A stretch of 64,000 bases of DNA from Haliotis rufescens (Eukaryota). The DNA is taken from the NCBI RefSeq assembly GCF_023055435.1, contig NW_025963850.1, positions 1 to 64,000 of the forward strand. The letters are read 5' to 3'. A program made the translations under genes and the position numbers. Below are positions 5,362 through 49,062 of the stretch, one piece after another. The notes beneath the pieces are model-generated. The model had not been told where the DNA came from, searched no databases, and saw only the letters and a list, made by a program, of their open reading frames with translations. Numbering within the stretch: the first letter of the stretch is position 1; every line of letters begins with the position of its first letter.

Positions 5362-5389
5362 GGGGTGGGTGTGGGGGCTGGGTGTGGGT

Positions 5390-5436
<47 letters not shown>

Positions 5437-5492
5437 GGGTGGGTGGGTGGGTGGGAGGGGGGGGGGGTGCGGGGGTGGGGGGGGTGGGGGGG
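5362..5492 (+). repeat. (GT)n / poly-G low-complexity tract
   Basis: gtgtgt followed by a run of about 30 G and ggggt units. Confidence 0.9.
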
Positions 5493-10318: not shown

Positions 10319-10351
10319 TTTATATATCGGACTAGCATAAGGGGATTCCCC
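10319..10351 (-). promoter_or_regulatory. TATA box + NF-kB (kB) site of DD3
   Basis: TATATAAA on the minus strand at 10326-10319. GGGGATTCCCC at 10341-10351, about 110 bp upstream of the ATG. Confidence 0.7.
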
Positions 10352-16085: not shown

Positions 16086-16240
16086 NNNNNNNNNNNNNNN
16101 NNNNNNNNNNNNNNNNNNNNNNNNNNNNNNNNNNNNNNNNNNNNNNNNNNNNNNNNNNNNNNNNNNNNNNNNNNNNNNNNNNNNNNNNNNNNNNNNNNNN
16201 NNNNNNNNNNNNNNNNNNNNNNNNNNNNNNNNNNNNNNNN
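16086..16240. other. Assembly gap (155 N)
   Basis: Run of n. Confidence 1.
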
Positions 16241-16504
16241 ATAGTAAAGTATAAATAGGTTCGTGGGGAACCCCATGCCATTTTGATTCATCCGGTATGG
16301 GTGTCAGCAGGCTTCTAGCTGTCGCTCTCCATGTTCCAGTGTTAAGAGGGGAGTGTTTGTAATTTTCTTTAATATTCAAAATCGGAAGATGCCTATTTTC
16401 ATACGAATGGACTATTGAAAAACATGCATTTCATTTGATTAAATATTATGGTTTCAAGAATAGTGTCAACTCGTAAGGGAGTTGAGAAAAAAAACCAATA
16501 CAAG

Positions 16505-16790
16505 GTTTGTGTAGTGCCGTCCACCCTTCCTTGTCCTCATCTGCAACACTTGCGCCACTCTTGATCACACGTGCGGCTACAGATTCATGTCCATTCTGAC
16601 AAATTATATATAGTGCCGTCCGTCCGTTCTCATTAAAAGCTGTAACACTAGCGCAACTCTTGATCACAAGTGCGGCTACTTATTAATGTCCATTCTGACA
16701 AATTATATGCACTGCCGTCCGTCCGTCCGTTCTCATTAACAGCTGTAACACTTGCGCCACTCTTGATCACAAGTGCGGCTACAGATTAGA
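16505..16790 (-). pseudogene. Degenerate inverted fragment (about 3 units) of the gene A-type ankyrin array
   Basis: The minus strand reads ...IKSCASVTAFNENGRTALYIICQNGHESVAARVIKSGASVADEDKEGWTALHK, the same 99-bp unit as 30590-33120. It has a 4-nt ggac slippage and a stop in the first unit. Confidence 0.85.
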
Positions 16791-19430
16791 TAATGTATAA
16801 ACAACCTGTAGATCAATCATCAAACCTTTTCAGTCATGGAACTAACCATATTGACAATGACAGTGTATTCGTATGGATGCATTGTATTGGTATCATGCAC
16901 AATCCGAAAATACACTCCACCCTGGCAGGTATTTCCACTCCAATTGTCCGTACTAATTGCAATTGCCAGGTGACGGTAGTTCACGTCCCTATATTTTCAG
17001 TAAGTAGTTGGTGCGGTATGGGGAACATGATGAGGTACCCAAAGGACCAGGACAAACTACGTAGGTATCATTCATGGTGTCATTGAACATCAGCATATGT
17101 CTGTGCACATGAGAATTGGACATGTTGCCATTGGAATCAACATCAGTGCTTATCATATTTCTCTCAATATGATCTTGTCTTGGAACAGCATAGTACTCCT
17201 TGCGTATCTGACAGTCCTCAGGTTGTGATTTTGACATATTTCATCACTCTTGGACATCCTATGAGAGTTACTTGATGAAAAGAAACAGTTGGTGTCTGTG
17301 AGCAGATCCCCCAAGGGAAGGCTATTTGTTTTTTCCATATCATCTGTTGTGAGATCAGGATTTTAACTTCATTTTTATAACAGACACTTGCACACATGGG
17401 ACATCTATCACAGACATTGTGTCTGGACGCCCCCATGGTTTTGCAGGTTAAAATAGACCCCAAGAGTCAATTGTGTACAGACCACCGAAACATAGATGGG
17501 ATGTAGGTGTCTGTCTGGCGTTTTACAACAAAACAAAGTATACTTTTCTTTTAATATCAATTTAACGCCGATTGTGCATTGGGTATGTGTTATTATATCT
17601 GGTGTCTGAAAATGATGTTATTACCTTACATTTATGATTTATCAATAAACATATGTAACATGAATTGTAGCCCTTAATTCCCATTCGTTTACTACCACTG
17701 TATGTTTCATATAAATGACAAAAGAAAAAGCCATCACAATAGATACAACAAAACAAAGGAATTAAACTTTACTCAAATAGAAAATTGATTTATAGTGAGT
17801 GAGTGAGGGGACGCAACTGTGCACAGCGAATCGCGGCGCCTTAGATGACTGGGCCACCCGTGCCCCCAAAATTGATTTATATATGACAAGACAGTTTTAT
17901 TAGCCAGTTCACAAAAGACACTTCACTTCCTTCATTGACGTCGGAGGTTGAAGGAGAGCGCTCGTTCGCCATGAACAAATCCCATTGAGCAAGACACACA
18001 AATGTTTATGGAATGTTACAACTAAACAAGGGATCCTTTAAAGTTTGGTGTTTACTTGGCCCTGGGTATAATATAGGTGCCCGGAATATTAAACCGGAAT
18101 CCCCACGGGGCACAACAATATTGCGAAACGAGATACATGAGTATCTGTCAAAATGTAGCAGTTGTTTATTTCATTGAAATGCTGTTAACTATTTTCATAT
18201 TGATGAGATATTAGAAGCCTATGTTTGCGCTTTGATATTTGAAGTGATAGGCCAGTTCCGTATCTTTCAGGTTTATTCGTTGAATTAACATAAACATACA
18301 TTCGGATATTTCGAATTGTACACATATATATAGCGCCATCGAAACATTCCTAAAATAATAAAATAATTCGGATAGCTCTCCGTCATTTACACCTGAGATT
18401 GAATCATTTTCTGTTATAACTCGCCACCCCAGTGCTGATGGCCATGTAAGACATGTCCATGTATTTGTACGTAAAAGATCCTGTATTATTTAGTGTTTGG
18501 CAGGGTAAGTCGTTGACGCATTGCCGCTCGGAACAATTACTTTGTATTGATAGACTTGCCGAAATCGTTTCGACTTAAGTCATGATTGAATTGATATACT
18601 AAACAGCATTCAAAGATTAATTAGAAGCACATTAGAGATACACTTTTTTCAACGGTTATTAAGAATATACCCTGGACACAAACAATACCGTGTTAAAACC
18701 ATTTTCCATTTGATGTTGATGAACATGATTTATGTGGTTTGTAGGATAATATTACCAACGCAGTGCTTCGTCTAACAAGTCGAACCAGAAATATATTATT
18801 TATAACGAACCTTGTCTGTCTCTCTTGAATGTGGTTAACCGGCTCAGTGTCTATTCTCTGTAATGGAAATGTTAACAGTTATCTAACTGTATATATGGAA
18901 TACTAGATGTACAAAATGTACGTTTTGATTGTTCAGTATAAGTGAGTAGGGTTAAAAGGGTTCATGTTAAAGTAGTGAGTGTGTATTGGTTAACGGTATT
19001 ACATTTATATTAAGACGTAGGGCACGGGGGCTTCCAGCCGTCTCAGGTGCCGTAATTCGCTGTGCAGAGTTGCGTCCATTGGTTCCTATGGTTCTAGGTT
19101 TTGTCAGCGCCGTACCCGTGCTCGTGAGAAACGTTTAAGACTTGCATCATTTCGGGATTTAGTACACGCCGTGATATGACTGGAATACTGTTCAAAGTGG
19201 TGTCAACACAATTTACGCACTTAAATTAAGCCTTTATCAATACGTGTCAAGTTGGTGAGGGAGGTAAGCCTGAAGTTATTACTAATATACACACGAGCAC
19301 AACACCCAATTCAAATGTTGCTATAATGCAATTGACCTAATACAGCTTTGGTTATGTAAATATTACACTGTACCTAAAAACATTAACAGGTAAATGAAGC
19401 AATGGTTATTTAAGAATGTCTTGGACCTAC

Positions 19431-19592: not shown

Positions 19593-19603
19593 GGGGATTC
19601 CCC
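19593..19603. promoter_or_regulatory. kB site upstream of DD4 exon 1, between DD4 and gene A
   Basis: GGGGATTCCCC within the near-palindrome gaaggggattccccttc. Confidence 0.65.
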
Positions 19604-21185: not shown

Positions 21186-24100
21186 ATGGATAGGGGGGAC
21201 AGAGAGGTGATAGCTCCGTACTTCACGGGGAAGAACAAGGCACTGAAGCTCACTGAAGTGTTGGAAATACTGGAGAACCCTGATGATACACGGGCTATAG
21301 TAACACCCCCTGCTCAACCCCATGGAGGAGACGGGTACTTGTACAGGGTGGAGGCAGACTCGGCGGAAGGTAGGTTAAAGAGTGCATGTCTTGAAGTTTT
21401 AACATTAATAAAAATGCATAATCTGATGAGTATTAATAAAGGGAGGATTAATAATGGAATAAGACAGTATTAATGAAACACTAAATTTGATTATTTATGT
21501 TGTGGGATGTGGTGTGATGGGGTCGTATGGGTGGGTATTGGGAGCAAGTAGCAGGTGTCAAATAGTCAAAGGAGCCACAGACCAGTGAAGATCCGGGGAA
21601 GAATTTATAGGTCTTCAGCAACACCTGTTTGCCGTAAAAGGTGACAATACTTGTAGTAAGAGGCGACTAACGGGATCGGGTGGTCAGGCTCACTGACTTG
21701 GTTGATGCATGTCGTCAATCCCAATTGCGTGTATCGAGGCTCATGATATCAATCACTGGAACAAAAACAAACACACAAAAGACGGAGTGGCATTTGGAAG
21801 GAGGGTAGTCATTGTTTCTAAAATAGTCCTGGGCTCGAATCTCAGATTTGTCTTTTATGTGATTCTAGGCTTGTAAACGTCGATGACCTATGAAGATCTA
21901 CGCCACTTTACGCCACTACTCCACTTTACCAAATGTTACTTTACTCATGCTTTAGCCTTCACAATGTAGAGATGAATAGCGACCTACTAGACCCACTGAT
22001 CCCTATGAACAATACAAATATAGTTGACTAAACGTTCACATACTAGTATGCTGTGATCGCGATCGTGATATCAGTTATATTTACACACACGTAAGGTTTA
22101 AATATAACCCGCTATTGACACAGTCAACACGTATATATGGAATGACAGCTCATCGCTCGCACTTCGTGGCAATGAGCCGGATCTTGCAAGGGAATATACG
22201 TACTCGTGTTACCTGTAATGAAAAAAACGTTCCCGACTGCAACTCGTAAATAGCACCCCGATCTGAGGCCATGCAACGCACTACCAAGCTCTTTGTATTG
22301 ATTCAGGTTGCAGATCAATGCACGTAGCTAGGCAGTGATAATGAAAACATTTTACGCTAAAAAGCATTGGCAGTTTCTCTTTCCAAACGCTACTTTTGAT
22401 GCAGAAAAACAAAACAACTAAAGAATTGCACTTAAAGAACATACGATGAAGTTGATTGTCAATGTATTGATTGGGCCGAAAGCTATGCAAATATTCACTA
22501 AGAAAGTTTGATTGCATGTGCGGTACTGATCAGGTAGCAGATGCACTATAAATCCCTTGTACATAATATTGTGGCAACATTATTTAACATTTTGTGATAT
22601 TTGTTACATTGTTTCATATTTACAAGTTTCAATTTATTCATAAATTAGAACGTGTTCTTGTCATCTTTGGTCTGAAGAAAGCCACCTTGAATTTAAATGT
22701 AAACTCACTTACAATTTGTGTCGACTTAGAACCTCTTAAATTTGGATTTAGACTGTTTGCCGTGAACAACGTTACATCCAGATTCGTCATTAGTTGACAC
22801 TGTCTATAACCTTCACATTGTGTCCTTAATAATAGTTCGTTATTGATCATTCTGTTTGATGGTGGACGTGGATGTAGGCTTGATTCTGTGTTTATATTAA
22901 ATTATGTTCATTGCAGCAGATACCAACTATAAACCAGGAAACATTGAATCAACTAACGCGAATTTTAGGGGGAAAACATGATCGAATCTGTATGTATATT
23001 ATATGAATTATTTTTATTGCAGCAGATCCCAAATATATAACTCAAATATATATCCCAAATATATAACCGAAACTAACACCTAACCGACCGAAATGACGTC
23101 TTGTAATCATTAAGTTAAGTTATTATTGCTCTACAGATTCCTGGGAAAATGACAACTACTACTTCAAGCACAATGGTTCTCGTGAACAGCCTAAACCTTC
23201 ACCCAAGGTTCTCAAGCAGGACTTCGTGGCTTATAAAAGTGATGGCACCACCACCGAGGCTTTTAAACGACAGGCATACAACTTGCTCGAGGGAGACGTG
23301 AAATATATATTAGTACACTACATTGGGAAATGCACAGTAGCATTATCCGATCCAAAATATGAGAAGCGTTTGAATACAGCCCTCCACCATGAATCCCAGA
23401 TAGTGAACAGTTACGCGATAATAGCTGGTTCTGGAGATGAAGATGGTGGAGATTGGGAGACCAGGGATATGGAATGTGATCATGATCGTGCAAATACTAA
23501 CTCTCCTACTTTCCTGGCTTCCTTAGATGAAGTTAGCTCAAGGAAAAGGACACATGACCCTGATATGGTAAATCGTGTGAAAACTCCTAAACGTTCAGAA
23601 AACGAACAAGTAATTGAAAACAATTTGATAGACATCATAACCACCGAAAGTGTTAGTCATCAACATGATGAAAGACCGACCAACCTCAAGTCACTCACCG
23701 AATGTTTGCTGAACAAACGTACTCATATCGTTATCGCAAGACGTGTGTTGAAGCAGGCAAAATACTGGGAGAAAAGCACCAGATTTCCTACCTTTGACAG
23801 TCCATGTTTATCATTAATCGCTGACATCGACTGTAAATGGAGAAATGACCTCACAGAAGTCAGTGACAGGTTGAAGTGGTCACGACTTAGCCCGGATGTT
23901 CTCGGCGAAGACCAGTGCAAGGATACGTATCACAGACTGGTATCTGCTGTCATAGTAGGTGCATATCACATGAAGACGGACATCACAGAGTTTGTTGACA
24001 CCCTCTATATGTACCCATCACATGTGATGGGTGACAACGCCTTAACAGATGACGACGATGGGACGGATCCTCAGATGTGCAAGGTGGGGCCCCACAACAT

Positions 24101-27100
24101 ACAGAGGAATCATCTCCTCGATCAAACAGCATGGCTTGGCGATGAGGTAATTTTTACGATTTCGTAGCTTATATTTTGCTCTTTATGTATTATATAATTT
24201 TATTCTGAAAATCCTTTCTAAAAGTTTAACATTACTTGGACAAATTAAAGGTACAAAATCGACCAGGACCATCTTCCTTCTCGGTCGTGGTCGGTAGGCC
24301 ATGTCAAATAATGATATCAGGAATAACATTATTAAAAATGAAAATTGTACAATATTGATAGATGATAAAAAGACCATTTGTTCCAATAGTTGAAATTGCT
24401 TACAGGCCAAATAACATTAACTCGCTCAATCGTTATTTGAGCAGTTCAGACAGGATATATGTTGCAATAATGTTTTTCTAAATTGCTGGTTGTAACACGT
24501 GACGAAGGGGTTTTGTATACAGGAAACTAAGGTTATAACGAACTCAAAGGGACTGCTAATTTTAGTTCGTTATAACCGTAGTTCGTTATAAGCATATATA
24601 TAGCATAACTACAGCAAATAGTCGGGACCAAAAAAGTAAGTTCGTTATATCCGTCAGTTCGTTATAAGCGTGTTCGTTATAACCGTACTTTAACCTCCAT
24701 TGCAGGTGATGAATGCATACATGCATGTCCTGAAGACCACGTGGAATAGGATCCACAGCCGCCACTGCGCTGTACTTGATTCCTTCCTTGTCAACCATTG
24801 GGAGAAAGACGAGTATGACGTGCACCCCTGCAAGGTTGGACGAGCATAGTCATGTACATTGTATAAAGTGATGAGTAAAGTACTGGTATTAGGTTTTCGT
24901 CCAAAGATGGAAATTAAAGAGACTTTTGAAGATCTTCGATTCGGTTATGGATCCTTGTTTAGCATCTACTTTAGGCTCTAAGAGATATGAGGTCGGTTTT
25001 GGAGACAGTTCATTGAAGATCTAGAGCAGCAGTTTTCCTTTTCCAAGAATATCATCACTGGACATATGTCAACATGCTATGTGCAGTAAACTACGGTTAT
25101 AACGAGGTTTAATGGCCGCTTTCAACAGTGTTCCAATTATTTCAGTGTGTCAGATTAATGTGGGAGGAAAGCAAGAAGTGATGCAGGTTTCAGACATTAA
25201 CCACTTTAGTTATTGAGTTTGAAATGTTCAATATCATAGCCATTTCAACATAAGTATCATACGCATGTATCCAAATCAGAGGGAAGTAATCGTATGGATA
25301 TGCTAATATCAGTAAACTTGATCAAATGGAAAAGAACTTATTGTAAATTATAATACAGTAATCTGTAGATAGACATACGTCTATGTGGTTAAAGAGCATC
25401 AAATGAACCTTGCTTGATCAGGGTAAAACATTCAAGACCATATTATTTTCCTTTTCACCAAAACCTTTACTGTAAATAAAAGCGACATAACCCTTTCCTC
25501 ATTCTAGCTTGTCCCCCATCTCAGTGGAGCTCCTTTTTTAATATAAATGTATGTGCTTCTTTCCTTTTTTGGAAACCAGGCGTTAGTCTGAAAAGCATTA
25601 AAATGTTTGGTTTGTATCAGTGACAAACACGATGCAATTCCATGTTTTGACTTTTGTACAATAATTATGTCTCTGTTTCTCGGGCGACCGGTTGACTTGT
25701 CTTTGCATGTGTTTGTGACAGGTGCCACCGGTGGACAGAATACGGTCACCTTTTGCGAACTGGTATTGTCACTATTTGCCAGTGATTTATTAGCACATGC
25801 TCGTGATATAGTCGGTATCATTCAAGGTGTTTGTTTTAATTATGGCAATGATTTTGCGGATTTATTTTATATTAGGAGGAACTTGGAACTTACACGTGGA
25901 TCCTGATGCCAGTGAACATGCCACTGAATCAACACTGGGTGCTTCTGGTCGCCAATGCCCAGGATGGAACAGTGGGCGTGGTCAACTCTAAGCCTGTCCT
26001 TGATGTAGGGGACAAACTTATACAACATTGGAGGTAATTTGAGGGCGTGGTCAGCTATATGTAGAGATAAACCTTTATCATCCAAAACTGATATCGCTTG
26101 GGTGAGATCAAGTGATATATATAGTTTAGATATTGCTGCAACATAATTGCATCACACTGTTTTGCAGACCATAGTGACGTCATTGGTTACCACGACGTCA
26201 CAAATGACATCACTAATGACTGCTACTGAAGCTGTTAGCAATACTTTTTACACTAAAGACACTGCGTATTACTGCTACAAACTGAAACAGCTGGCAGAAT
26301 GATGTTGGATGATAAATTAAAGCTCACCCTTGTGTCTTTTGATGTCAAATATATCAACACTCGTTGATATTTTTTACTCTAAAAGACACTCTAGTGAGAT
26401 TCTCTATGAACAACACTGTAAGTAGGTGGGCCGAACAGGTGATGTGGTCAACTCACAGCCTAAAATTGATGAAGACTACTGCGCTGACCAGAGCTGAGGT
26501 ACACACTGATGAATGTCTGCTACCGATTTTGAAACAAAAGCTGCAATCTGGCTCAGCTACAAACATGTATAGTTAATCAGTCCTAAATGTATAGCGCTAG
26601 GTTGTAGGTGGGTTTGAGACAGGGGAAACAAATAGAGGTCGTAAACTATATCCTATATCTATTTCAGAAAATATACACGCTGTTTGAGGAGAGGTGATGG
26701 GTCAGTGATCACATGGACAAAGACAGAATATCCAGTACTGAGTCAAAGTGATGGACATAGCTGTGGCGTGTTTGTGAATATGGTACGTGAGCTAGATAAG
26801 ATATATAAATCTTTCATTATTGAATAGTATCAATGATAAGAGCATATACAGCTAAACATGATGAATTGCTATAATTTATTATACAGTTTAAATTTCTCAA
26901 CATTTCCACTTTTTTCACTAAATCTTCTGCAATTCCACCCAGCATGGGAACTATATTACAAATGTCAATCGCATGAGCATGCTCTTGGGTACTTGCCATT
27001 CAAATGTGTCATTATCAAAACTGAATATTTCTAGTAGTATCTTAACATACCATATCAGTATTAATATACTGATCCGTTTCTACGATATGTGTTTACTTAA

Positions 27101-30100
27101 ATTTCCATAGTTCTAACAAGTTTTTTTATACAGTACGTTTGTATTAAAAACAAAAGCAAGAAGACAATGTGGACTTTTATTTTTAAATATAATATATTTC
27201 AATGTGTACAATGTATTCTGGCACTCTAAATCGACATTCAACGGGATCATGCTGTTGGAAAAAGGCTCTGAGTGAGTGAGTGAGTGAGCAAGCGAGCTTG
27301 GTTTCACGCCACCTTTAGCAATGTTCCAGCAATAGCGCGGTAGGGGACCCTAGAAATGGGCTTCAAACATTGTACCCGGGAATTGAACCCGGATCTTCGG
27401 CGTGATGAGTGAAAGCTTTGACCACTGGGCTACCCCACCCCACTGACCTGATATGAGACCGTATACCGTCAGTAACAGCCATTTAGGATTTTCATACACC
27501 AACTTCACATATTTCACAAGAATATTCTGGTACAGAAATCCGTTATTTGACACGGTTTTGTGTATTAATGAAATTAATTGTGATGTGCAAAGACATCAAT
27601 TTTTAAAACAACTACGTTCGTGACTTCATTACTAAAATTAATAGAGGAAAAAGGCTCACAACAGAGGTCATTGAACATAAAAGATGACGTCACGAACAAG
27701 AAACGCAACGCCAATAACGTCACATAGCAGTAGACCAGATAGAAGTCCATTGTTAGGGATAAGCGGACTGCTATCAAGTTACAGTTGACACCAGACTCCT
27801 GTTAACATAGGTCAGTTTTATTATAATTCTATCTTGTTTAAACGTTAACGTTTAGTGCTTTATTTATTCCATTGTTAACGTTTGTGTTTACATTAGAGCG
27901 TTGTATCGGAAACACGCCTTGCCCAATGTTTTTCTCTTTACCTAATATGACACCGTATACTGCCACTATAGACACCTTAGGGGTCAAACACTGAAGAACA
28001 GTGCTTTATTTTTTTGTCAATTATTCGTCACCAGTGGCTCTATATTGTTACAGGCAGCAGAAGCTGTACTATCGGAGGTGCCTCCTAGTGTCATGAGAAG
28101 CTGCCACACTGTCTGGTACAGGAAGTACATCTGGCGCAGGTTGCGAGAATATGCTGGTGAACATATTCCGCCTGATACTGACACACATAGTGAGTATAAG
28201 TATTGTTTTCCAAATATACCTCAAAACCTAAATACATACAAAAGACAAAAAACATTCCATATTCATGGTACACAATCAGAGTCGACCATGTCATTGGCAT
28301 GTGTTTATGAATCACTACCAAATAGTGTGTTCACGACAAGGTGAACATATCCTGCCAATAGCAATATATATCCCACAACAAAACTAGAATGTCCAAACCC
28401 ACGTACCACTGGGCGTACTTGTTATGTCAGAAAACTTTGTTATTATTCGTTTCCCGCTAAATCTAGCATTGTCGTACCACGTTTATGTACTGTAAGACGC
28501 AAGTTAGGGACAATTCATAAAGCGGTTCAGTTTATATGTTTGTTTAACGCCCCACTCAGCAATATTCCAGCTATATGACTGCGGACTGTAAATAATCGAG
28601 TCTGGACCAGACAATCCAGTGATTGATATCATGATCATCGATTCACGCAATCGGGATACGCTGTTATGCTTAACCAAGTCAGCGAGCCTGACCACCCGAT
28701 CCCGTTACAAGCATAGTCGCCTTTTACAGTCAAACATGGGAAGCTAATATTTGTTACATGTGTTGTGCTGAACTGAATATCAAGCATGTTGATGGTTAGG
28801 TTTTTAAGTAGTTCAATACTACTGAATAACTATATATTAGACAAATTGCATTAGAATGCTTAGAGACATTAACGTGAGTTATTAGATTGACACCCGCTGC
28901 TGGCTTGTTTCCAGCTATTCGAAAAACTAAAACCAGTAGCGAATCCACTGCTCCTGAATTAGCTGTATTACGCTCGGTCATTCGCCGGTCGGTCATCACC
29001 ACAACGTGGGTTTTCTGTATCAGTTCTGGTGTTGCTGACTTCACAGGCCTTCCAGGACGGGGGTCGTCTTCAAGGCACTCCCTGTTACACTCAAACTCTG
29101 CTGCCTAACTCGTTATGTTGACAGTGGGACATACTTCCCTAGTGCTGTATTCATATCTTCATGGATGGCTTTTGGCTTTGTTATATAAATCCTTTTTTTC
29201 TGCAATTCCACTTGACTGCACATTCCTAAAATTTGTCCATTTTCCAAAGGTCACAGACCTCTGCTTGTTTTGATTACTTTTGCGCAATTCCTTCTATCAG
29301 AGTCTCAGATATCAGTCAACCATCGTTGCTGATACATTGCTGAGAGAATATTGTCATTCACTCACTCACTTATTATTCACATGTTTTTAATGATGAAGTA
29401 ACGACTGGTATTATTTCCAATGTTGAAGTGAAATATTAAAGCAAGTACATCGTACATGTTACAGGTTGTATTGAAATGTTTGTAATATTTCTTGTTATTC
29501 AAGTACGAGTGAAGCCTGGCATACTGGAAAGTGTCCGGACCTCTATATTCGCAATGGGCAAAAACTTAATATTAATATTGCTATCACAGGATATTCAACA
29601 AATCCCGATTTGACGAAATATAACAATGTAGAGGGGTTGTATGTCGGTTATGATAAAGGAAGACAACTATTAAAATATGTTCCTAAATTCCGTGTTTTCA
29701 CTTGTACCATATGTTACCATGTTTCGCAAATTACCAATTGACTTGCCTTTGCATGTGTTTGTGATGTGTATCACCAGCAGGACAGGATATGTTCGCCTTT
29801 TCGTGGACACCTGATATTTGATAGGGATTAAAAAACACATGCTCATGAACGGTCATAGAGGATCATCAAATATATGTGAATTTTATATGTTGGCACATGG
29901 TGTTTATTGTGGTTGATACATAGATTTACAAAGAAAACAGCATGTACAAAAGCCAAAATCTCTTTAATGTCGATTCAAGTAGTACACATTGTAAGCGTTA
30001 AAATATATAATGTTTAAAAGTGTGTTTATTTCAAATATATTGCTAAATGATGAATTAACCTGTTTGGTTCTGTATTTGAAATATCGTTGTCCTTCTTGCA

Positions 30101-33100
30101 GTGCTTGAGTCTCCATGTGAAAAGCTGACAAATAATCCAGCGTCAACGAATGCCAGAGCGTTTGCGTATACAATAGTCAATATGTCGACCAGCATAGATG
30201 ATACGAGATACAGTTTGCATAAAGCAGCCAGCCTCGGTGATATAAGACGCATGCACTTGTTGATAGACCAGGGGGAGGATGTAGCAGGTACCGATGACCG
30301 AGGATGGACGCCTTTGCACTGTGCCTGTGAAAACGGTCACGTTACAGCTGTCTCTGATCTGGTTTCCAGGAGGACGGGCGACGTACAAAATAGAGCTCAA
30401 CTTACATTGTACAATCCTGTCTTAGGAACGGAGTATACGTATCTAGCAGGAGCATATCCACTCCACATTGCTTGTTTAAATGGACATGAGAATGTAGCGC
30501 ACATTTTGATCAATAGCGAGGCAAATGTTGACGACAAAAGTGAAAATGGAACAACAGCTCTTTTTCTTGCTTCTATTAACGGACATGAATCTGTAGCCGC
30601 ACTTCTGATCAAGAATGGTGCAAGTGTTACAGCTGAGGACGAGGGCGGATGGACGGCACTATATGTAGCTTGTCAGAATGGACATGAATCTGTAGCCGCA
30701 CTTCTGATCAAGAATGGTGCAAGTGTTACAGCTGAGGACAAGGACGGATGGACGGCACTATATGTAGCTTGTCAGAATGGACATGAATCTGTAGCCGCAC
30801 TTCTGATCAAGAGTGGTGCAAGAGTTACAGCTAAGGAAAAGGACGGATGGACGGCACTACATGTTGCTTGTCAGAATGGAGATGAATCTGTAGCCGCACT
30901 TATGATCAAGAATGGTGCAAGTGTTACAGCTGAGGAGAAGAACGGATTGACGGCACTACATCTAGCTTGCCAGAATGGACATGAATCTGTAGCCGCACTT
31001 CTGATCAAGAATGGTGCAAGTGTTACAGCTGAGGAGAAGGACCGATGGACGGCACTACATGTAGCTTGTCAGAATGGACATGAATCTGTAGCCGCACTTC
31101 TGATCAAGAATGGTGCAAGTGTTACAGCTGAGGAGAAGGACGGATGGACGGCACTACATCTAGCTTGTCAGAATGGAGATGAATCTGTAGCCGCACTTCT
31201 GATCAAGAATGGTGCAAGTGTTACAGCTGAGGAGAAGGACGGATCGACGGCACTACATCTAGCTTGTCAGAATGGACATGAATCTGTAGCCGCACTTCTG
31301 ATCAAGAATGGTGCAAGTGTTACAGCTGAGGACAAGGACGGATGGACGGCACTATATGTAGCTTGTCAGAATGGACATGAATCTGTAGCCGCACTTCTGG
31401 TCAATAGTGGTGCAAGTGTTACAGCTGAGGACAAGGACGGATGGACGGCACTATATGTAGCTTGTCATAATGGACATGAATCTGTAGCCGCACTTCTGAT
31501 CAAGAATGGTGCAAGTGTTACAGCTGAGGAGAAGAACGGATCGACGGCACTACATCTAGCTTGCGAGAATGGACATGAATCTGTAGCCGCACTTCTGATC
31601 AAGAATGGTGCAAGTGTTACAGCTGAGGACAAGGACCGATGGACGGCACTACATGTAGCTTGTCAGAATGGACATGAATCTGTAGCCGCACTTCTGATCA
31701 AGAGTGGTGCAAGTGTTACAGCTGAACACAAAGACGGACGAACGGCATTACATCAAGCTTGTCAGGATGGGCATGAATCTGTAGCCGCACTTCTGATCAA
31801 GAATGGTGCAAGTGTTACAGTTGAGGACGAGGACGGATGGACGGCACTATATGTAGCTTGTCAGAATGGACATGAATCTGTAGCCGCACTTCTGATCAAG
31901 AATGGTGCAAGTGTTACAGCTGAGGACAAGGACGGATGGACGGCACTACATGTAGCTTGTCAGAATGGACATGAATCTGTAGCCGCACTTTTGGTCAATA
32001 GTGGTGCAAGTGTTACAGCTGAAGACAAGTACGGATGGACGGCACTACATCGAGCTTGTCAGGACGGACATGAATCTGTAGCCGCACTTCTGATCAAGAA
32101 TGGTGCAAGTGTTACAGCTGAGGACAAGGACCGATGGACGGCACTATATGTAGCTTGTCAGAATGGACATGAATCTGTAGCCGCACTTCTGATCAAGAAT
32201 GGTGCAAGTGTTACAGCTGAGGAGAAGGACGGATGGACGACACTACATGTAGCTTGTCAGAATGGACATGAATCGGTAGCCGCACTTCTGATCAAGAGTG
32301 GTGCAAGTGTTACAGCTGAACACAAAGACGGACGAACGGCATTACATCAAGCTTGTCAGAATGGAGATGAATCTGTAGCCGCACTTCTGATCAAGAATGG
32401 TGCAAGTGTTACAGCTGAGGAGAAGGACGGATCGACGGCACTACATCTAGCTTGTCAGAATGGACATGAATCTGTAGCCGCACTTCTGATCAAGAATGGT
32501 GCAAGTGTTACAGCTGAGGACAAGGACGGATGGACGGCACTATATGTAGCTTGTCAGAATGGACATGAATCTGTAGCCGCACTTCTGGTCAATAGTGGTG
32601 CAAGTGTTACAGCTGAAGACAAGGACGGATGGACGGCACTACATCGAGCTTGTCAGGACGGACATGAATTTGTAGCCGCACTTCTGATCAAGAATGGTGC
32701 AAGTGTTACAGCTGAACACAAAGACGGATGGACGGCATTACATCGAGCTTGTCAGAATGGACATGAATCTGTAGCCGCACTTATGATCAAGAATGGTGCA
32801 AGTGTTACAACTGAGGACAAGGACGGATGGACGGCACTACATGTAGCTTGTCAGAATGGACATGAATCTGTAGCCGCACTTCTGATCAAGAGTGGCGCTA
32901 GTGTTACAGCTGAGGACGAGGACGGATGGACGGCACTACATCTAGCTTGTCAGAATGGACATGAATCTGTAGCCGCACTTCTGATCAAGAGTGGCGCTAG
33001 TGTTACAGCTGAGGACGAGGACGGATGGACGGCACTAGATCTAGCTTGTTTGAATGGGAATGAATCTGTAGCCGCACTTCTGGTCAAGAATTGTGCAAGT

Positions 33101-33139
33101 ATTACAGCTGAGGACAAGGACGGATGGAATAAAGAGTAA
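21186..33139 (+). CDS. Gene A: CG-1-like + Ulp1/SENP-type C48 peptidase + about 29 ankyrin repeats (1589 aa, 7 exons)
   Basis: Exons 21186-21369, 23137-24146, 24706-24834, 25876-26033, 26668-26782, 28054-28189 and 30102-33139. All GT-AG, phases 1,0,0,2,0,1; 4770 nt without an internal stop. C48 motifs WLGDE|VMNAYM, ILMPVN..NQHWVLL (His 25933), VVNS and QSDGHSCGVF (Cys 26762). N-terminus PAQPHGGDGYLY..DSWENDNYYF..FKRQAYNL..YILVHY resembles CG-1. The ANK exon is the 1012-aa ORF. Confidence 0.8.
24518..24695. mobile_element. Tc1/pogo-like MITE remnant in gene A intron 2
   Basis: Begins tacagg..gttataacgaact and has repeated inverted ttcgttataa(c/g) motifs. Ends just before the exon 3 acceptor. 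Confidence 0.5.
27269..27442 (-). mobile_element. tRNA-derived SINE (family 1)
   Basis: Reverse-complement copy with (GAGT)n tail. Confidence 0.8.
28520..28740 (-). mobile_element. SINE-like repeat (family 3)
   Basis: Reverse complement of the 9665-9880 type. Confidence 0.7.
28940..29245 (-). mobile_element. Mariner transposase N-terminal remnant in gene A intron 6
   Basis: Frameshifted translation MDKF*...PKAIHEDMNTALG...AAEFECNRECLEDDPRPGRPVKSATPELIQKTHVVVMTDRRMT, the mariner HTH / EDDPRSGRP / DRR motifs. Confidence 0.75.
30590..33126 (+). repeat. Coding minisatellite: about 25 near-identical 99-bp ankyrin units
   Basis: Unit ...gaatctgtagccgcacttctgatcaagaatggtgcaagtgttacagctgagga.aaggacggatggacggcacta.at.tagcttgtcagaatggacat. 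Confidence 0.95.
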
Positions 33140-33330: not shown

Positions 33331-34589
33331 CCATTGAGCTGAGAATGATTTTTGGGTGAACACTTTTCAATGTCTAAGCTTAGAGTATGCTTGTGCATGG
33401 AGAACAGTGCCATTCAAATAACGTGGATTTTATGTCCGCTTTCGGGTTTGATTTTTATTTGTTGCAAGGTCATAGGAGTTGCCTACCATGTCAGTTTTCG
33501 CAACTGTCCTTGTTTCATGGACAGAGGTTCATATAAACCATGAAACGTTTACTCAAATACATGTCTGATTTGTATTACTGTCCAATGATATTTAAAATGC
33601 TTTGAATAATAAAAAGAAATATTCAGAGAATGTTATTGGTGCCTTTCAGCTAAATTACAAAATGTTATTGAGTTACTTGTGTCTAATACCTGAACATGAC
33701 CTACTTTCAGTTATGTTATCAATGTCAAATATTGAGTTATAGATTCAGTGCCCAAGGGACGCAACTCTGCACAGCGAATCGCGGCGCATCCGTGCCCCCC
33801 GAGTTATAGATTCATGATTGAAATCATTCTTATGGCACCCAATAATTGCTTTTATCCTATGAGTCATAACTGGTTTTGTAAAACTCACAATCCAAGTGCA
33901 TACCTTTAGAAAAACAATACCATGTTGAACATTTATTCTTTTTTGGATTTTTTAAATAAAACTTTAAATGTTTATACGATTCTGTTAAATCATTTCATCT
34001 TCTGGGGAGAAGAGGTGGCCTAGTGGTTAAAGTGTCCGTTCGTTCTGGGAGTTTGATTCCCCACATTGGTACATTGTGTGAAACTCAAGGCTGGAATACT
34101 AAAAATAAGATTGTGTTCTTTAATCCGATTGGTTGAAAAACATGATTTACATCAGTTTGTCTGACTGATAACTGAACTTACTTAAATTAAATTTAAAATG
34201 AATAAGTTACCAAGACTAGAACACGCGTACGCCAGCAGACAAAATATCCGGCCCGTGAAGAGAATTAGAATTAGGTCTTCAGCAAACAATGCCTGCTCAT
34301 AGAGTCGCAAGCTCCGACGTTCATACAGTTTGGCCCTACACTCTATGAAGGTTCATACTCCAATGAACTCGCACAAAGTGAAGATCAATTCTTAATTGAA
34401 TGCATTGAATTTCATTTCCAAAATATAAACCACATAGTGACCAAGAATTACATCCATCGGGCACTCACATTAAAAAAAGGAAGCCAAATTCTTGGGAATA
34501 AGTTTTGAAGACCATCTTAATTTCTAGCCATATGTTAAAAATCTTAGCAAATGGCTGAAGGAACTGGATTTATCAGGTCGGGGAAAACC

Positions 34590-34675: not shown

Positions 34676-35149
34676 AGAATAAACTGGTCCTGTGTGGCTA
34701 CAAAAACCTTGCGGTGTTTTGTCCGTGCGTTGTCTGTACTACTTGGCGCATGATGGTGCGTATAAAATTCATTATGAAAACTTCTTTCATTCATCGATTC
34801 TTATAATATTACCCCGTTTGTTGCGCAGGTTATTGTGAACCCGAGTACCTCTTCGCCATTTGGACGGTTCATTCGCGTTACGCCGACTTTCAGAAAAGAT
34901 TATTCGCGTTACGCGGTTTTTCTTTGATGTGTGCGTGTTATGTTAACACACGAGGTTGTTACAAGCAAGCAATGAATGGTGTTTTTGGATGGTGTTCACG
35001 ACACATTCTAACAGTAGAAACAACAGATTTATGATGCATTTTGTGTCGTTTATTCCACACATTATATAGTATCAAAAGCAGCGACATGACAAATTTCAAT
35101 TTGGTACAACGAACAGAACATGATTTACATGAATTATTACATTTTTTTA

Positions 35150-35895
35150 ACTTAATTAGAATGGCTGATGCAACATCGGCACAGTGGACGATGTCGATTT
35201 CTTGCCTCTCCAGCCTCATCTTCAAATTGGCGATCTTGCGGTCGACTTCTGAGTATTTCTTCTTCTTGGGAGGTCTCTTCTGAACTGCTTCGTACTGCGC
35301 TCTGAATTTCCGAGGACTTCTGCTCTTTGGAAAGGAAGGTAATCATCTCGAAAATGTTGGGATGTGCCTTTCACGTGATCTTCAGTCGACTGTGCCATCC
35401 CTCCAGGTAGTTGTTTGTACGTGGCCCATCATTGTTGAAGTGGTTCCACTGGTTGATGTGGAGATCGCACTCGATCCACTTGCTGGTCATGTAGTCTGCA
35501 AGTCTTTGACATCTTTCATCGTCTAGAACGCGCTCCATTAGGTCAAGGAAGTAGTCTTCAACCTTAAGATAAAAATGTAATCCTGTCAGTTTCACACATT
35601 AACATGCATATTGAATATATTACACATTAACATGTATATTACGTATATCAAGTTAATAGAGTCTAATCTAACGGTCTGGTTACTACTTACATTGCCAACA
35701 GGAATGAGTGGCATTATTGCACACTGCTTGACGAACTTTGTAATCTCTGGTCTGTCAGTATAGTCTTTCTGCATGTTGCACTGTTGGGTCTTCCGCCATA
35801 CACACTGGGCAAAGTGGAAGAAGCATCCCTTCCATGTGGCACGAGGAAACCGCGATATGGCAGCATTCCTGGCAGCGACTTCGAAGTCCATCTGA
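35150..35895 (-). mobile_element. Mutator-like (MULE) transposase C-terminal remnant with an intron; disrupted
   Basis: MDFEVAARNAAISRFPRATWKGCFFHFAQCVWRK (DFE, CxFH), intron at about 35691-35564, then VEDYF...WNHFNNDGPRTNNYLEGWHSRLK*..HPNIFEMI (RTNNxxEGWH). Has a stop and a frameshift. Confidence 0.85.
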
Positions 35896-37300
35896 TGAAA
35901 ATAAATTAAAATTTATTATGATTTTTAAAGTTTATTTTGACCCCAAATGTCTAAAGGTCGGCGTAACGTGAAGACACCATTTGGACACATTCTGTGCTTT
36001 AAATCAGTCAAAAACACTAAATTGAAAGTCAAAAATTACCTGAAATGTACTTTGTCAACCACTCTCTCCGTCCACCATGCTTCCTACTCTGACCCGCCAC
36101 CTGCAGTCCAGGCAGTCAGGTAACGCCCAATTCGGGCCTTGGCGTCAGTGATCAATGGAAATTTTTTGAAATAGTTCGCGCTGCATTGCTAAAAGTGGCA
36201 ATAAGTGTAGGCAATTCATAGTCTTTGTGCTGTATCATAATGTTTTTATGGACATTTAACTGTTGAATATACATGTGTATGTATTACAAATAAATTTCGT
36301 TGTTATTTATGAAAAGAAGTATAAAATATTGTTATGTTGGTAAAATTTGTTTCAGGATGTTAAAGTAAAAAAATCCACAAAGAGGAATCAATGGCAGTGG
36401 GTGGGCTTTTCTGACTCTTTGCGATCTTCTGGCGTAATGAAGAGTTTCTTCACTGTGGGTCTTCCACCCTTTTCTAGAAGATTCTCCTTAATCATTATTT
36501 CTCTGAAATAATTTCGGAAATAAATGTCACTATTTTCCTAATAAACACAAAAAATAATCTGTGTATGTGTGTGTGTGCGTGTGCGTGTGCGTGCGTGCGT
36601 CAGAGTCAGAGAAAATGGCGTCGTGCCACTGCTATACATCTGGATCTAACACGTGATTTTGTCCAGGCCTGTCAGGTGGGGTGTGCAAGGGCTTGCCTCT
36701 AAATGCTTGCTTTTTCTAAGCCAAGATCTCCACCCTGCTATCTCCGGCGACAGGGAATTGTCAGTAGCTCATCACCAACTGGCATCAGTATGTTGGTTTT
36801 CATCTGTTATACAAAATTATTGATTATAGAAGCCTACTTGGAGATCAGAGGATCTGATGCAAGTGATCCCCATCAGATGGCCACACCGGGGTATCAATGA
36901 GTCCCAAAGGTATTTCACATGTTGTGATATACTATAAATTTTACAAACTTTTACAATCAATTTAAAACACATTATGTAGGTTTAATGAACCGCAAATATG
37001 CATATATTAATGTTTTCATTTTCTTCCAGCTTAACAAACGCGTTCCAATTAACAATGAAACGATTCATTTAATGAAACCCACACATCTTTCGCAAACTCA
37101 GGCTGCACCAATTTCAACAACCTCGCATGTTAGTACCCAAACTCCTGAACCGCTTCCAACACTGTATGGTCAACTTCAAACCCCAAACATCTACTTCTAT
37201 CACTTACCCCGAGTCAAGAACTCCCACGGTTGAAACCACAACTGACATCACAAAAAGGTCCAACAAAAGACGTAAACAAAAACAAAGCAGTCATAACCAA

Positions 37301-39690: not shown

Positions 39691-41969
39691 CATATGAAAG
39701 AATCGGGTGTTCGTTTTGAATAGTATGTACTGTAAATCTTTAAATTAACTAAAGAGTTAATTATCAATGCAAACATTGAGAGTAGACTTTATTAATTAAA
39801 CTTTGTATTTATGTCTCAGTAATGTGTCTGATTGGAGTATTCATTTTAAACTTTCGGCATCTTGTACTAGTGGCTAGCTCTGTAAAAATGGCATAAGTCC
39901 GGATTAATATGAGCAGACATACATGCACATACACACACACGTGCATACACGTCGCTGTAAAAGTGCAATAATCTTGGACGCAACGTTAAACTCCATTTCA
40001 CTTAAAAAGACTTAATCAAATAAAAAACCTACTTATTTATACTTGGCAAACGTATTTGTACTGAATATCGTTTGTGAAGTCATATGGGAAGATTAGATTG
40101 GGAAGGAAATTAGTTTTCTGCCCCACTCACACTAGCCATTGACGAAACATGGTGCATGTCCCTTGCCGATCTCAAATCCTTCAAGATTACATTTCAATCG
40201 CAGGTTATCGCCAGCCATACTGCCACCGCCTTTACAAACAGTATCCTGGCTTGTGTCCAGTGAACAAAGTCAGTTGTAGACAACGTCCGCATAGAAAATA
40301 TGCAAACCACGTTTACGGTAGCTGGTCAAAGGGAGGCAACTCTGTTTGCAGATATTATGCCAGCAAATGAAAAGTACTGAAGTTTTTATAACGAGACCTG
40401 GATACTGTGGGAAAATGATTACAGTATTTTCCTGTTTTCCATCAAGCAAATTTGTTCTTCATCTCATTTACATGATAGGGTGAAAGTTTGATCTTTTGAT
40501 GTGGTCCAAGCCCATTTCACAGTCACAACCATTGTATCTGTAACCTATTGTTCAAGTAATGAGAATGGTAGAGAAAACGTATACGCTCACTTATGCTATT
40601 TCTAAACAGAGGGACGGTTTGGATATTTGAAACCATGTACAACGTGAAGGTTTTGTAGCACTGTGATCACTGGTGAAGATGAACAGTTCCAAGTTTTCAG
40701 GCGATCGTCACATCCCATTGGCACATTTTCTATATTTGACTATACTTGATGCACCGCACACGCATCAGGGAAAATAAAGACAGAAGACGTTTGCCGAGCA
40801 ACAGAGTCCCTGCTTCTGTTAATGTTCGTAGTTGTGGAGTCACTTTGTGCTTGAGGCATTGGCTTCGCCACGACTACGACGGGGTTCCATTCTCAACATG
40901 AATAATGTTTAAGATAATTATTGGTGCCCCTCCCGTGATATGGAATTAATAAATGAAACTGACTAAAAATTACATCAACAAAATGTTGAACATTGATTGC
41001 TTACAAGCCATTGGTTGATGTCATTATTCTGGTCCTGCTGTGTATTATGGTTCAAGTCGTGCTGCAGTGTGACAGTTAACTTGTGTGTGTAGACAGTAAA
41101 CCATGAAATTAGTCTTCAGCGGGCGGACGGGGACAGATGTCAGTGATTCCGGATTTTCGGACTGCCGTTGGAAGGCAGGTTTCAGTGAAAGGAAAACCTG
41201 AGGTCACATTATGAATATGTTCTGATTACTGACTTAAATAATCTGTTCTTTATTCAATTTAATTTAGAAAGTATGTGAATATCTGAGTATTTTATCATTG
41301 CTATGACTGTGAGGTGGAGGTATTTGAATTCGTCAGGGATATTTGTACAGATAATAGCGACAAAATCCTTTCCAAAATCACCAGAAATCTCTTCTGAAAG
41401 CTGATTCCATTTTACGATATTAAGACTTTATTAAAAGCATTACTACGTACTTACATTATTTCTTAGAGATATTTCACATGGAAAATCGAATACGTAGCAT
41501 TCTAAATTCAATAAATATACAACGTCAACGCCTGAGAATAACCAATCTTGATTATCCACCGAAACACATTCCATTGGGCGTAAAAGGCATAGTGATGAAA
41601 ACTATAGGAATGGATTACTGAAAATCATTCAGTCTGATGACACCATGTCTCCCGAAAGTGTACGCATGTCCTGCCAAACCGGTAGGAGCCGCCATTGGTA
41701 CAATTTGACTCCACCTGTTCTTGAGGTAAACTTGCAAATGCAGAAAACACAAAGGAACAATGATTTGATAAATATATATATTTCCCAAACATGATGACTG
41801 ATTATATGCCCCCCGTTTACTGATCGCTGTAAAGTAGAAGTGAGATTACAATATCTCTGAACAAGGTAAAAATGTATGACGATAGTCATGTTCAAAATGA
41901 AAAAAAACAAGTTTCATTTCTTGTAATATTTCTCCGACCGAGGTGCAATTACATTGACAAGGAGGGCCG

Positions 41970-45231: not shown

Positions 45232-45242
45232 GGGGAATCCCC
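45232..45242. promoter_or_regulatory. kB site of DD6
   Basis: GGGGAATCCCC about 100 bp upstream of the ATG. Confidence 0.7.
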
Positions 45243-49029: not shown

Positions 49030-49062
49030 TTTATATATTGTAGTAGCGTAAGGGGATTCCCC
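49030..49062 (-). promoter_or_regulatory. TATA box + kB site of DD7
   Basis: TATATAAA (minus) at 49037-49030; GGGGATTCCCC at 49052-49062. Confidence 0.7.

Follow-up and report, generated by a model that had tools for sequence, protein, structure and literature searches.

We observed that gene A, located on the + strand at positions 21186-33139 of a Haliotis rufescens contig (the window, i.e. the whole stretch of DNA that was analysed, has 64,000 nt), encodes one protein in which a CG-1 domain, a basic linker, a family-specific helical region, a C48 peptidase and ~28 near-identical ankyrin repeats follow each other in this order. That a single ORF brings together a domain resembling CG-1, a C48 peptidase of the Ulp1/SENP type and an extended ankyrin array had been proposed in a preliminary description of the sequence and was borne out. 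The combination of CG-1, a SUMO-protease-like domain and ankyrin repeats is seen so far in an abalone family only and is undescribed in the papers searched. The product of gene A is most likely an isopeptidase of the SUMO type that would act in the nucleus, tethered to DNA, with the ankyrin array choosing the substrates; the whole explanation, a fusion family restricted to Haliotis together with this predicted function, we consider probable.

The seven exons of gene A (Table 1), with lengths summing up to 184+1010+129+158+115+136+3038 = 4770 nt, make a frame of 1589 codons in which the sole stop is the terminal one; all introns are bounded by GT..AG. The RefSeq homologue P0023 starts at the same Met as exon 1. 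Junctions 1/2 and 2/3 were placed by their canonical splice sites, by the reading frame and by the identical joins that the RefSeq homologues P0001 and P0023 show. Junctions 24834/25876, 26033/26668 and 26782/28054 were found in spliced contigs from four runs of four studies, while the junction 28189/30102, leading from the protease to the ankyrin exon, was found in contigs from three runs of three studies; a single 884-nt contig (run X5, record 16) covers exons 4, 5, 6 and 7. The public runs were tagged ‘RNA?’, and their RNA nature was deduced from the spliced contigs themselves. In four runs contig depth was 290-490 in exons versus 5-35 in introns. Gene A is intact, and it is spliced and transcribed; the splice sites, the open frame and the four junctions in contigs confirm the seven-exon model drawn initially from the sequence, and the RNA contigs joining 28189 to 30102 place the protease and ankyrin exons in one transcript rather than in two.

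Table 1. Coordinates of gene A, its functional sites and its paralogue gene B in the 64,000-nt window
Feature	Position	Strand	Description
Gene A exon 1	21186-21369	+	ORF with start codon; donor AAG|GTAGGT; N-terminal half of CG-1 (~21216-21369)
Gene A exon 2	23137-24146	+	C-terminal half of CG-1 (23137-23330); basic and acidic linker (~23325-23678)
Gene A exon 2, further parts		+	Family-specific helical region; onset of the C48 fold from ~24009
NLS-like basic cluster RKRT	23541-23552	+	Linker translation
NLS-like basic cluster KTPKR	23580-23594	+	Linker translation
First Gly-Gly-clamp Trp (WLGDE motif)	24132-24134	+	P0025 Trp aligns with Trp of SENP1 NWLNDE
Gene A exon 3	24706-24834	+	C48 domain; Pfam Peptidase_C48 14.5 bits
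Gene A exon 4	25876-26033 (158 nt)	+	Catalytic His and Asn at the place of Asp; Pfam C48 17.2 bits
Catalytic His (HW motif)	25933-25935	+	Aligned to catalytic His of SENP1 (2IYC)
Asn at the place of catalytic Asp	25984-25986	+	VVNS against SENP1 YYDS
Gene A exon 5	26668-26782	+	Oxyanion Gln and catalytic Cys
Oxyanion Gln	26744-26746	+	QSDGHSCG aligned with SENP1 QMNGSDCG
Catalytic Cys	26762-26764	+	QSDGHSCG aligned with SENP1 QMNGSDCG
Gene A exon 6	28054-28189	+	Final helices of the C48 fold (fold match to the equivalent of ~28165); ends in phase 1
Gene A exon 7	30102-33139	+	Ankyrin array and stop codon
Gene B	57645-64000, runs off the window	+	CG-1 and C48 modules as in gene A, different last exon
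Gene B exons	57645-57825, 58587-59656, 60364-60499, 61010-61167, 61706-61823, 61925-62243, 62368 onward	+	

When the exons were scanned singly, exon 1 matched the Pfam CG-1 profile (PF03859, gathering cut-off 23.5 bits) at 11.5 bits over profile positions 3-45 and exon 2 at 17.3 bits over positions 82-114, while the matches of exons 3 and 4 to Peptidase_C48 (PF02902, gathering cut-off 20.7 bits) span profile positions 7-50 and 86-114, respectively. By these scores the per-exon matches of gene A to both profiles are weak but collinear. Among the homologues, CG-1 was above the cut-off in P0001 (30.9 bits) and P0005 (25.0 bits) and slightly under it in P0004, P0025 and P0013 (22.7, 21.1 and 20.3 bits). 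A phmmer search with exon 2 against 1.84 billion representatives returned bona fide CG-1 proteins at E-values from 1e-4 to 1e-8. In the reciprocal direction, an HMM built from the N-terminal domain of the Haliotis proteins matched all CG-1 repeats of the Capitella teleta protein R7TPW2, as well as three further CG-1 proteins, at 39-82 bits; ESM features of the domain pointed toward CG-1 clusters, too. The N-terminus, described initially as CG-1-like, is thus by profile comparisons a divergent but genuine CG-1 domain.

The resemblance to CAMTA includes the N-terminal position of CG-1, the ankyrin repeats further on and the retained motifs P..G..YLY, W..D.Y.F and ILVHY. Still, the abalone proteins carry a protease between CG-1 and the ankyrin repeats, and their array is 10-30 times longer; TIG/IPT and IQ domains were not found in Pfam scans of P0001, P0004, P0005, P0006 and P0013. 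The CG-1 scores in the abalone family (20-31 bits) are also well apart from the 64 bits (49 positions) of a canonical CAMTA-type exon in the same genome. The nearest relatives of the abalone CG-1 domain are lophotrochozoan multi-CG-1 proteins, e.g. R7TPW2 with its six repeats; these consist of CG-1 repeats only, having neither protease nor ankyrin repeats, and their existence shows that in this branch of the animals CG-1 has moved out of its CAMTA setting.

Both NLS-like clusters reported earlier for the gene A linker, RKRT and KTPKR, are present in the translation, and basic clusters occur at the equivalent position of the linker in all subfamilies (e.g. KKKKRRKKK runs in the giant forms); by such motifs the protein would be imported into the nucleus. 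A candidate for self-cleavage, a linker Gly-Gly whose cutting would free the CG-1 head, was seen at similar places in genes A and B; the idea was dropped, as in the giant forms the Gly-Gly is absent or located elsewhere and its occurrence is expected by chance.

The assignment of the peptidase is clearer in the homologues, with C48 scores above the cut-off in P0001 (44.3 bits), P0006 (63.2 bits) and P0025 (42.0 bits); gene B exon 4 alone reached 23.0 bits. Alignment to the SENP1 sequence (2IYC) gave an E-value of 3.5e-4 and allowed the catalytic positions to be assigned. When solved structures were searched by phmmer with truncated P0002 as the query, only chance-level matches were obtained. 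The fold evidence was taken from an AlphaFold2 model of P0025, a gene-B-type homologue standing in for the gene A product, and the domain limits in exon 2 were transferred from the fold match on P0025 (residues 373-590) and then checked on gene A. The model built with 19 aligned sequences had a pLDDT of 62, with values of 75-90 over residues 265-590 (the protease region) and low confidence in the CG-1 part; the model built with nine sequences (mean pLDDT 35) was unusable. With the former, Foldseek found SENP2/SENP1 at an E-value of 4e-8 and probability 1.0, and VIA-align gave a Z-score of 23.9 for Ulp1 (rmsd 2.5, 208 residues aligned), followed by SENP1 (23.2), SENP3 (22.6), SENP5 (21.8) and NEDP1 (20.6), the last being only slightly below the SENPs. 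The profile matches and the superposition on Ulp1 and SENP1 at Z-scores of 23-24 uphold the initial assignment to the Ulp1/SENP type, and the modelled fold is nearest to the cellular Ulp1/SENP1-3,5.

With Ulp1/SENP1, SENP2, SENP3 and SENP5 (MEROPS C48, clan CE) the abalone domain shares the fold, the His, the Cys, the oxyanion Gln and two clamp Trp, the second of which is the W of the HW motif, matching HW in SENP1. It differs in having Asn at the triad Asp, in an identity of just 15-20%, in the family-specific helical region that precedes it, and in its fusion to CG-1 and to 14 to >70 ankyrin repeats. We know of no SENP fused to CG-1 or to an ankyrin array.

The motif QSDGHSCG is invariant in the family alignment. 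The catalytic Asp of the C48 triad is absent from gene A; its place is taken by Asn there, as well as in gene B and in eight of the nine aligned homologues, with Asp seen only in P0013. Such a replacement could reduce or alter activity, and it may be argued that the domain is a pseudo-protease that cleaves nothing and merely binds SUMO or another ubiquitin-like protein within an ankyrin scaffold, a reading with which the weak constraint on recent paralogues would also agree. However, His, Gln and Cys are invariant in the nine homologues and, along with both clamp Trp, across subfamilies that are ~26-50% identical, an invariance hard to account for without catalysis. Moreover, pS273R of ASFV, which shares the fold class (clan CE, SUMO-protease-like), is an active protease with a Cys-His-Asn triad (PMC9920524); thus, Asn at the third position is compatible with activity. 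The likeness goes no further than triad and fold: pS273R processes a viral polyprotein, has an ‘arm’ domain and lacks both CG-1 and ankyrin repeats, and structurally it is much farther from the P0025 model than the SENPs are (Z-score 13.6). We regard the loss of cleavage as unlikely and retain the reading of an active isopeptidase.

In exon 7 we observed 28 Ank stretches (PF00023, E-value 1.7e-235), while TRF detected a 99-nt period at 30581-33128 (25.7 copies, 92% matches); the long ankyrin array that had been noted for gene A is therefore real, and it consists of 33-residue tandem repeats. Variation is concentrated at repeat positions 2-4, 6, 10, 11, 14, 15 and 17. The pN/pS value was 0.86 for ‘binding-face’ codons versus 0.58 for the scaffold; as the face positions were picked after looking at the data, this contrast cannot be taken as formal evidence of positive selection.

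Gene B, which lies in the same window, retains the exon boundaries of gene A, as had been stated in the preliminary description: exon 4 has 158 nt in both genes and the last intron is in phase 1. Compared with homologues, the 136-nt exon 3 of gene B has a +1 frameshift within a run of G. Its last exon encodes a helical region followed by ankyrin repeats with another consensus. No Walker A motif was found in this last exon; a STAND NTPase in the members of gene-B type and in the giant forms was considered and rejected, since the helical region is without Walker A, save for one chance-like match in P0006.

The family includes at least 42 loci, situated mostly in same-strand tandem arrays, and members were found only in Haliotis: neither the HMMER scan of 1.84 billion representatives nor word-based searches detected the fusion outside this genus. 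In the H. cracherodii RefSeq protein P0001 (76% identical), CG-1, C48 and ankyrin all exceed the Pfam cut-offs; it has 14 ankyrin repeats and the same exon joins. The giant forms P0004, P0005, P0006 and P0013 (3458-4108 aa) have the same domain order. Across the family the N-terminal CG-1/C48 module is constant, while the ankyrin part ranges from 14 to >70 repeats. In A as in B the last intron is in phase 1 and the exons that follow it are unlike, which fits a swapping of exons, in which the C-terminal ankyrin part is exchanged between paralogues across this intron.

It had been suggested that the gene descends from transposon cargo, namely a MULE- or Zisupton-type element with an Ulp1 domain that later captured an ankyrin exon through the phase-1 intron. 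The intron phase is as described in A and B, and with the unlike last exons it could be counted in favor of such a descent; taken as a whole, the suggested origin found no support. There is a MULE-like transposase remnant 1.8-2.8 kb downstream of gene A (34962-35912), and like the Ulp1 domains of KI-MULEs and Zisupton the C48 domain is present in a multi-copy genomic family. Yet the remnant is on the opposite strand, decayed and split over three frames, with a Pfam score of 17.3 bits against a cut-off of 27.6 bits; its close copies occur behind A-type paralogues only, which makes it a passenger of the duplication unit and not a feature of B-type or giant members. No terminal inverted repeats bracketing gene A were found: the flanking inverted pair at 19049/33752 turned out to be a small fragment of an interspersed repeat present in ~37,000 copies, and other inverted pairs near the gene were SINE-like copies in introns. 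In contrast to transposon Ulp1 genes, the abalone genes have no transposase in the same unit and strand, are tandem rather than dispersed and conserve a multi-exon structure with its introns, while the predicted protease fold is nearest to the cellular Ulp1/SENP1-3,5. An origin from transposon cargo is, in our opinion, very unlikely.

Estimates of dN/dS for exon 2 were 0.45-0.7 against the 76% paralogue and ~0.6-1.3 among 93% paralogues, the latter values indicating weak constraint on recent copies. One could think that gene A is a young, nearly neutral duplicate, open and transcribed merely owing to its youth, with the family function carried by other members. Ratios near 1 among 93-99% paralogues, an exon-2 copy on contig C6 that is 100% identical, and stops or frameshifts in some paralogues, gene B included, all point this way. 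These observations are to be weighed against the stop-free 4770-nt frame, whose splice sites are intact and whose catalytic residues are all in place, the excess of exon over intron depth in four runs and the lower dN/dS against the 76% paralogue, in view of which we find the neutral duplicate highly improbable. The idea of an annotation chimera, i.e. two genes, one for the protease (exons 1-6) and another for the ankyrin repeats (exon 7), joined on paper only, might be prompted by the 1.9-kb intron ahead of the 3-kb terminal exon and by the different last exon of paralogue B, but it is largely refuted by the 28189/30102 contigs of three studies, with one contig covering exons 4-7, and by RefSeq models from H. 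cracherodii and H. rufescens that independently read across this very join, so that hardly any credence is left to it.

Returning to the predicted tethered isopeptidase, the domains suggest the following mode of action. The basic linker would take the protein into the nucleus, where the CG-1 domain, judging by homology, would anchor it on DNA or chromatin; the ankyrin array would pick the substrates, and the protease would strip off them a modifier ending in Gly-Gly and related to ubiquitin, most likely SUMO.

On the minus strand near gene A we observed Death-domain ORFs with kappaB-like and TATA modules. The tandem expansion of the family, the variable ankyrin surface and the adjoining Death-domain genes, whose promoters are kappaB-like, point to a possible part in innate defence or in another fast-evolving conflict. 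One could speculate further that the CG-1/Ulp1/ankyrin gene and the head-to-head Death-domain genes with their kappaB-like promoters constitute a module of innate immunity, made up of two genes, repeated and peculiar to abalones. Its diverse ankyrin array would sense a ligand in the nucleus, for instance a protein from a virus or a transposon, and the DNA-tethered SUMO-type protease would act as effector. This extension we hold to be rather unlikely; if true, the module would be a new animal class of sensor-effector built without a STAND NTPase.

To our knowledge, CG-1 has hardly been described outside CAMTA transcription factors, in which it serves as the DNA-binding head, and no SENP/Ulp protease is known to be combined with a DNA-binding domain or a repeat array. 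In the literature searched no paper combined ‘CG-1 domain’ with ‘Ulp1’, and nothing relevant was found for abalone. The claim of a novel architecture holds with respect to this literature and does not extend to the databases: RefSeq already contains the sequences, in models labelled ‘uncharacterized protein’ or ‘ankyrin-3-like’. The architecture is thus undescribed rather than unseen, and the gain is in recognition and annotation, not in new sequence.

A SUMO-type protease tied to a DNA-binding domain and a variable ankyrin array suggests removal of ubiquitin-like modifiers directed to particular loci or targets. The family also offers enzymology a natural series of Ulp1-fold enzymes with His-Asn-Cys active sites. 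With dozens of tandem copies in one genus beside Death-domain genes, it presents a testable case of lineage-specific regulation or defence in molluscs, for which exon shuffling may be the route by which such systems are built.

We characterized gene A, the seven-exon gene that joins a CG-1 domain (the CAMTA-type DNA-binding domain), a C48 peptidase (the Ulp1/SENP SUMO-protease family) and ankyrin repeats, as a member of a gene family that is a new architecture among Ulp1/SENP-fold proteases and is confined to one genus. Sequence searches used individual exons of gene A or natural database homologues as queries. Exon 2, scanned with HMMER against 1.84 billion representative proteins, had 15 matches only, and those with a protease part all came from Haliotis (H. 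cracherodii, H. rufescens, H. rubra and H. asinina). The top match (XP_071097256.1; 1233 aa, 76% identical) has the same exon joins as gene A and is above the Pfam cut-offs for CG-1 (30.9 vs 23.5), Peptidase_C48 (44.3 vs 20.7) and ankyrin; giant homologues of 3458-4108 residues have the identical domain order, followed by 40 to >70 ankyrin repeats. In a literature search we found no paper joining CG-1 with Ulp1 and none on this gene family in abalone; the sequences already have RefSeq entries, named 'uncharacterized protein' or 'ankyrin-3-like', and all three Pfam families are listed for them in precomputed tables.

RefSeq annotation of the family is uneven. The model of one A-type paralogue (P0024, H. 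rufescens LOC124114938) lacks the CG-1 domain because it starts out of frame within exon 2 (cf. window 23176-23271); it also continues about 170 residues beyond the position of gene A's stop.

In the AT-rich window (about 39% G+C) the exons of gene A (184, 1010, 129, 158, 115, 136 and 3038 nt; canonical GT..AG introns) join in frame to 4770 nt with one stop, at the end, which reproduces the figures of the preliminary description. The public sequencing runs aligned to the gene are labelled 'RNA?' only, their RNA nature being deduced from contigs that skip the predicted introns exactly. Junctions 24834/25876, 26033/26668 and 26782/28054 were spliced in contigs of four runs from four studies, and junction 28189/30102 (GT..AG, 1912 nt skipped) in contigs of three runs from three studies; one 884-nt contig of run X5, differing at six letters, comprised exons 4, 5 and 6 and extended 473 nt into exon 7. 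The protease and ankyrin parts thus belong to one transcript, as had been proposed, rather than to separate ones. Contig depth in run X1 was 290-490 on gene A exons vs 5-35 in most intron bins; a repeat copy at 28431-28828 had very high depth in all runs. The contig alignment covered a 6-kb stretch, with junctions 1/2 and 2/3 outside; for these two the support comes from the splice consensus, the reading frame and RefSeq homologues with identical joins. As near-identical paralogues exist, the source of the contigs may be gene A itself or a copy with 95% identity or more; the architecture is transcribed, whichever copy gave them.

The N-terminal domain, described earlier as CG-1-like, can be identified by sequence as a true, divergent CG-1. 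Its Pfam matches are weak and collinear (exon 1, 11.5 bits, profile 3-45; exon 2, 17.3 bits, profile 82-114). Exon 2 as sole query recovered proteins with Pfam CG-1 scores of 56-137 bits and, reciprocally, an HMM from eight abalone N-termini matched every CG-1 repeat of these proteins (39-82 bits), including all six repeats of Capitella R7TPW2; the neighbours by ESM features were CG-1 clusters. CG-1 is shared with CAMTA; however, TIG and IQ elements were not found by Pfam in full-length abalone homologues, and therefore the gene A product is not a CAMTA. Four database proteins, P0007, P0008 (Capitella teleta R7TPW2), P0009 and P0012, consist of CG-1 domains in tandem, two to six per protein, with nothing further recognisable, so CG-1 occurs outside CAMTA, in annelids and metagenomic/transcriptomic sources. 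On another contig of the assembly, C212, the canonical CG-1 profile (64 bits, CAMTA-type exon) matched seven times, at near-identical sequences 70-150 kb apart; either the CAMTA region is tandemly duplicated there or the assembly is at fault.

The assignment of the middle part to Ulp1/SENP-type peptidases is borne out by collinear Pfam C48 matches in exons 3 and 4 (exon 4 of the paralogous gene B passes the cut-off by itself), by alignment and by predicted fold. When SENP1 (2IYC) was aligned with P0025, a gene-B-type homologue (E 3.5e-4), the family His coincided with the catalytic His and QSDGHSCG with the Gln/Cys motif, both Trp of the Gly-Gly clamp were matched, and Asn (VVNS) occupied the catalytic Asp position. 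His, Gln and Cys are invariant in nine aligned homologues (about 26-50% identical), with Asp for Asn only in the homologue P0013. The AlphaFold2 model of P0025 (19 sequences; pLDDT 75-90 over residues 265-590) gave VIA-align Z of 23.9 to Ulp1 (rmsd 2.5 Å, 208 residues), 23.2 to SENP1, 22.6 to SENP3, 21.8 to SENP5, 20.6 to NEDP1, 18.5 to SENP7, 13.6 to ASFV pS273R and 11-16 to bacterial CE-clan effectors; Foldseek on the protease model gave E 4e-8. The viral enzyme pS273R is functional with a Cys-His-Asn triad (PMC9920524), so the Asn of the abalone proteins is not strong evidence of an inactive enzyme.

The long ankyrin array expected in the same ORF was found in exon 7, as 28 Pfam stretches or 25.7 copies of a 99-nt tandem repeat (92% matches). 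Variation among repeats clusters at positions 2-4, 6, 10, 11, 14, 15 and 17. Designed ankyrin proteins bind through the face of hairpin and first helix, to which we take these positions to correspond. The pN/pS value there, for positions picked after looking, was 0.86 vs 0.58 in the scaffold, not clearly higher. An isolated two-repeat ankyrin fragment (16449-16679, minus strand) adjoins an assembly gap (16086-16240) upstream of minus-strand Death-domain ORFs; it has the consensus of the gene A array (QNGHESVAA..IKSGASV) on the opposite strand, and could represent either a relic or one exon of an ANK-Death gene.

Coordinates of features in the window and, in the last line, on contig C212
Feature	Position	Strand
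Gene A exons 1-7	21186-21369, 23137-24146, 24706-24834, 25876-26033, 26668-26782, 28054-28189, 30102-33139	+
Gene A active-site codons (translation and SENP1 alignment of P0025)	Trp 24132-24134, His 25933-25935, Asn 25984-25986, Gln 26744-26746, Cys 26762-26764	+
Death-domain-like ORFs (Pfam Death)	1636-2049, 7618-7971, 9090-9461, 41917-42348, 44241-44636, 48016-48387, 52120-52485	-
Perfect kappaB-like sites, GGGGAATCCCC	10341-10351, 19593-19603, 45232-45242, 49052-49062, 52917-52927	
Interspersed short repeats, opposite orientation	21668-21760 (intron 1), 28615-28707 (intron 6)	
Element of ~37,000 copies, inverted around gene A	17809-17852, 19034-19082, 33752-33785	
CAMTA-type CG-1 matches, C212	299555, 441200, 512314, 594422, 665207, 736703, 805106	

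Protease exon 4 had 42 matches in the 1.33-Gb assembly (two with in-frame stops), 38 of which were in same-strand tandem arrays on C6, C72 (the contig of the window) and C594 at 41.6-41.9 Mb, spaced by 20-50 kb. Gene B (57645 onward) indeed keeps the exon boundaries of gene A, including the phase 1 last intron; its last exon differs, with a helical region, in which no Walker A motif was found, and then ankyrins of another consensus. Exon 3 of gene B (60364-60499, 136 nt) carries an additional G within the G-run near 60392-60396 in comparison with the homologues P0025, P0026 and P0028, shifting the frame from IMDTYLHLLEG to ...EWCSRVGFHC; the database model of the locus, P0027, begins downstream of this frameshift. 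It is either a true inactivation (pseudogene) or a homopolymer assembly error. Judging from sequence comparison, the family evolves fast (exon 2 dN/dS about 0.6-1.3 among recent paralogues and 0.45-0.7 vs the 76% paralogue).

The suggested origin from a domesticated transposon was not supported. A MULE-like transposase remnant (34962-35912), on the strand opposite to gene A, is decayed, in three frames, and scores under the Pfam MULE cut-off (17.3 bits); its copies of 88-100% identity lie only 12-18 kb behind A-type paralogues, while >600 distant relatives are dispersed genome-wide. The sole inverted pair flanking gene A was rejected as terminal inverted repeats, being a piece of an interspersed repeat with about 37,000 copies. 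Examination of the remnant, these repeats and the copy distribution revealed no link between protease and mobile element; the protease could still have a deep transposon ancestry. Elsewhere in the window (5263-5632), a G-rich low-complexity tract contains long poly-Gly and poly-Pro frames, one per strand.

Minus-strand Death-domain-like ORFs, two of the seven passing the Pfam cut-off (24.6 and 27.9 bits vs 22.6), lie upstream of genes A and B, head-to-head with the CG-1/Ulp1/ANK genes. A degenerate kappaB motif matched 28 times vs 2.5 expected in the window, in copies that are paralogous and hence non-independent. At least three kappaB-like sites, located 430-880 bp upstream of Death-domain ORFs, are followed on the minus strand by a TATA box at a distance of 15-20 nt; the module at 19593 is 1.6 kb upstream of the gene A start codon.

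Beside the observed architecture, transcription, folds, catalytic residues and family layout, one could place a mechanism suggested by sequence and predicted structure. The protein would enter the nucleus via the basic clusters that every subfamily has in its linker, CG-1 would tether it to DNA or chromatin, the ankyrin array would pick substrates and the protease would remove a Gly-Gly-ended modifier, most likely SUMO, as the SUMO-specific Ulp1 and SENP1-3,5 structures top the ranking, with NEDP1 close. The expanded family, its variable array and the neighbouring Death-domain ORFs and kappaB-like sites make a role in defence or conflict a reasonable guess. The family is of interest mainly because it offers a case in which two ideas can be tested, a targeted SUMO-type protease and lineage-specific exon shuffling.
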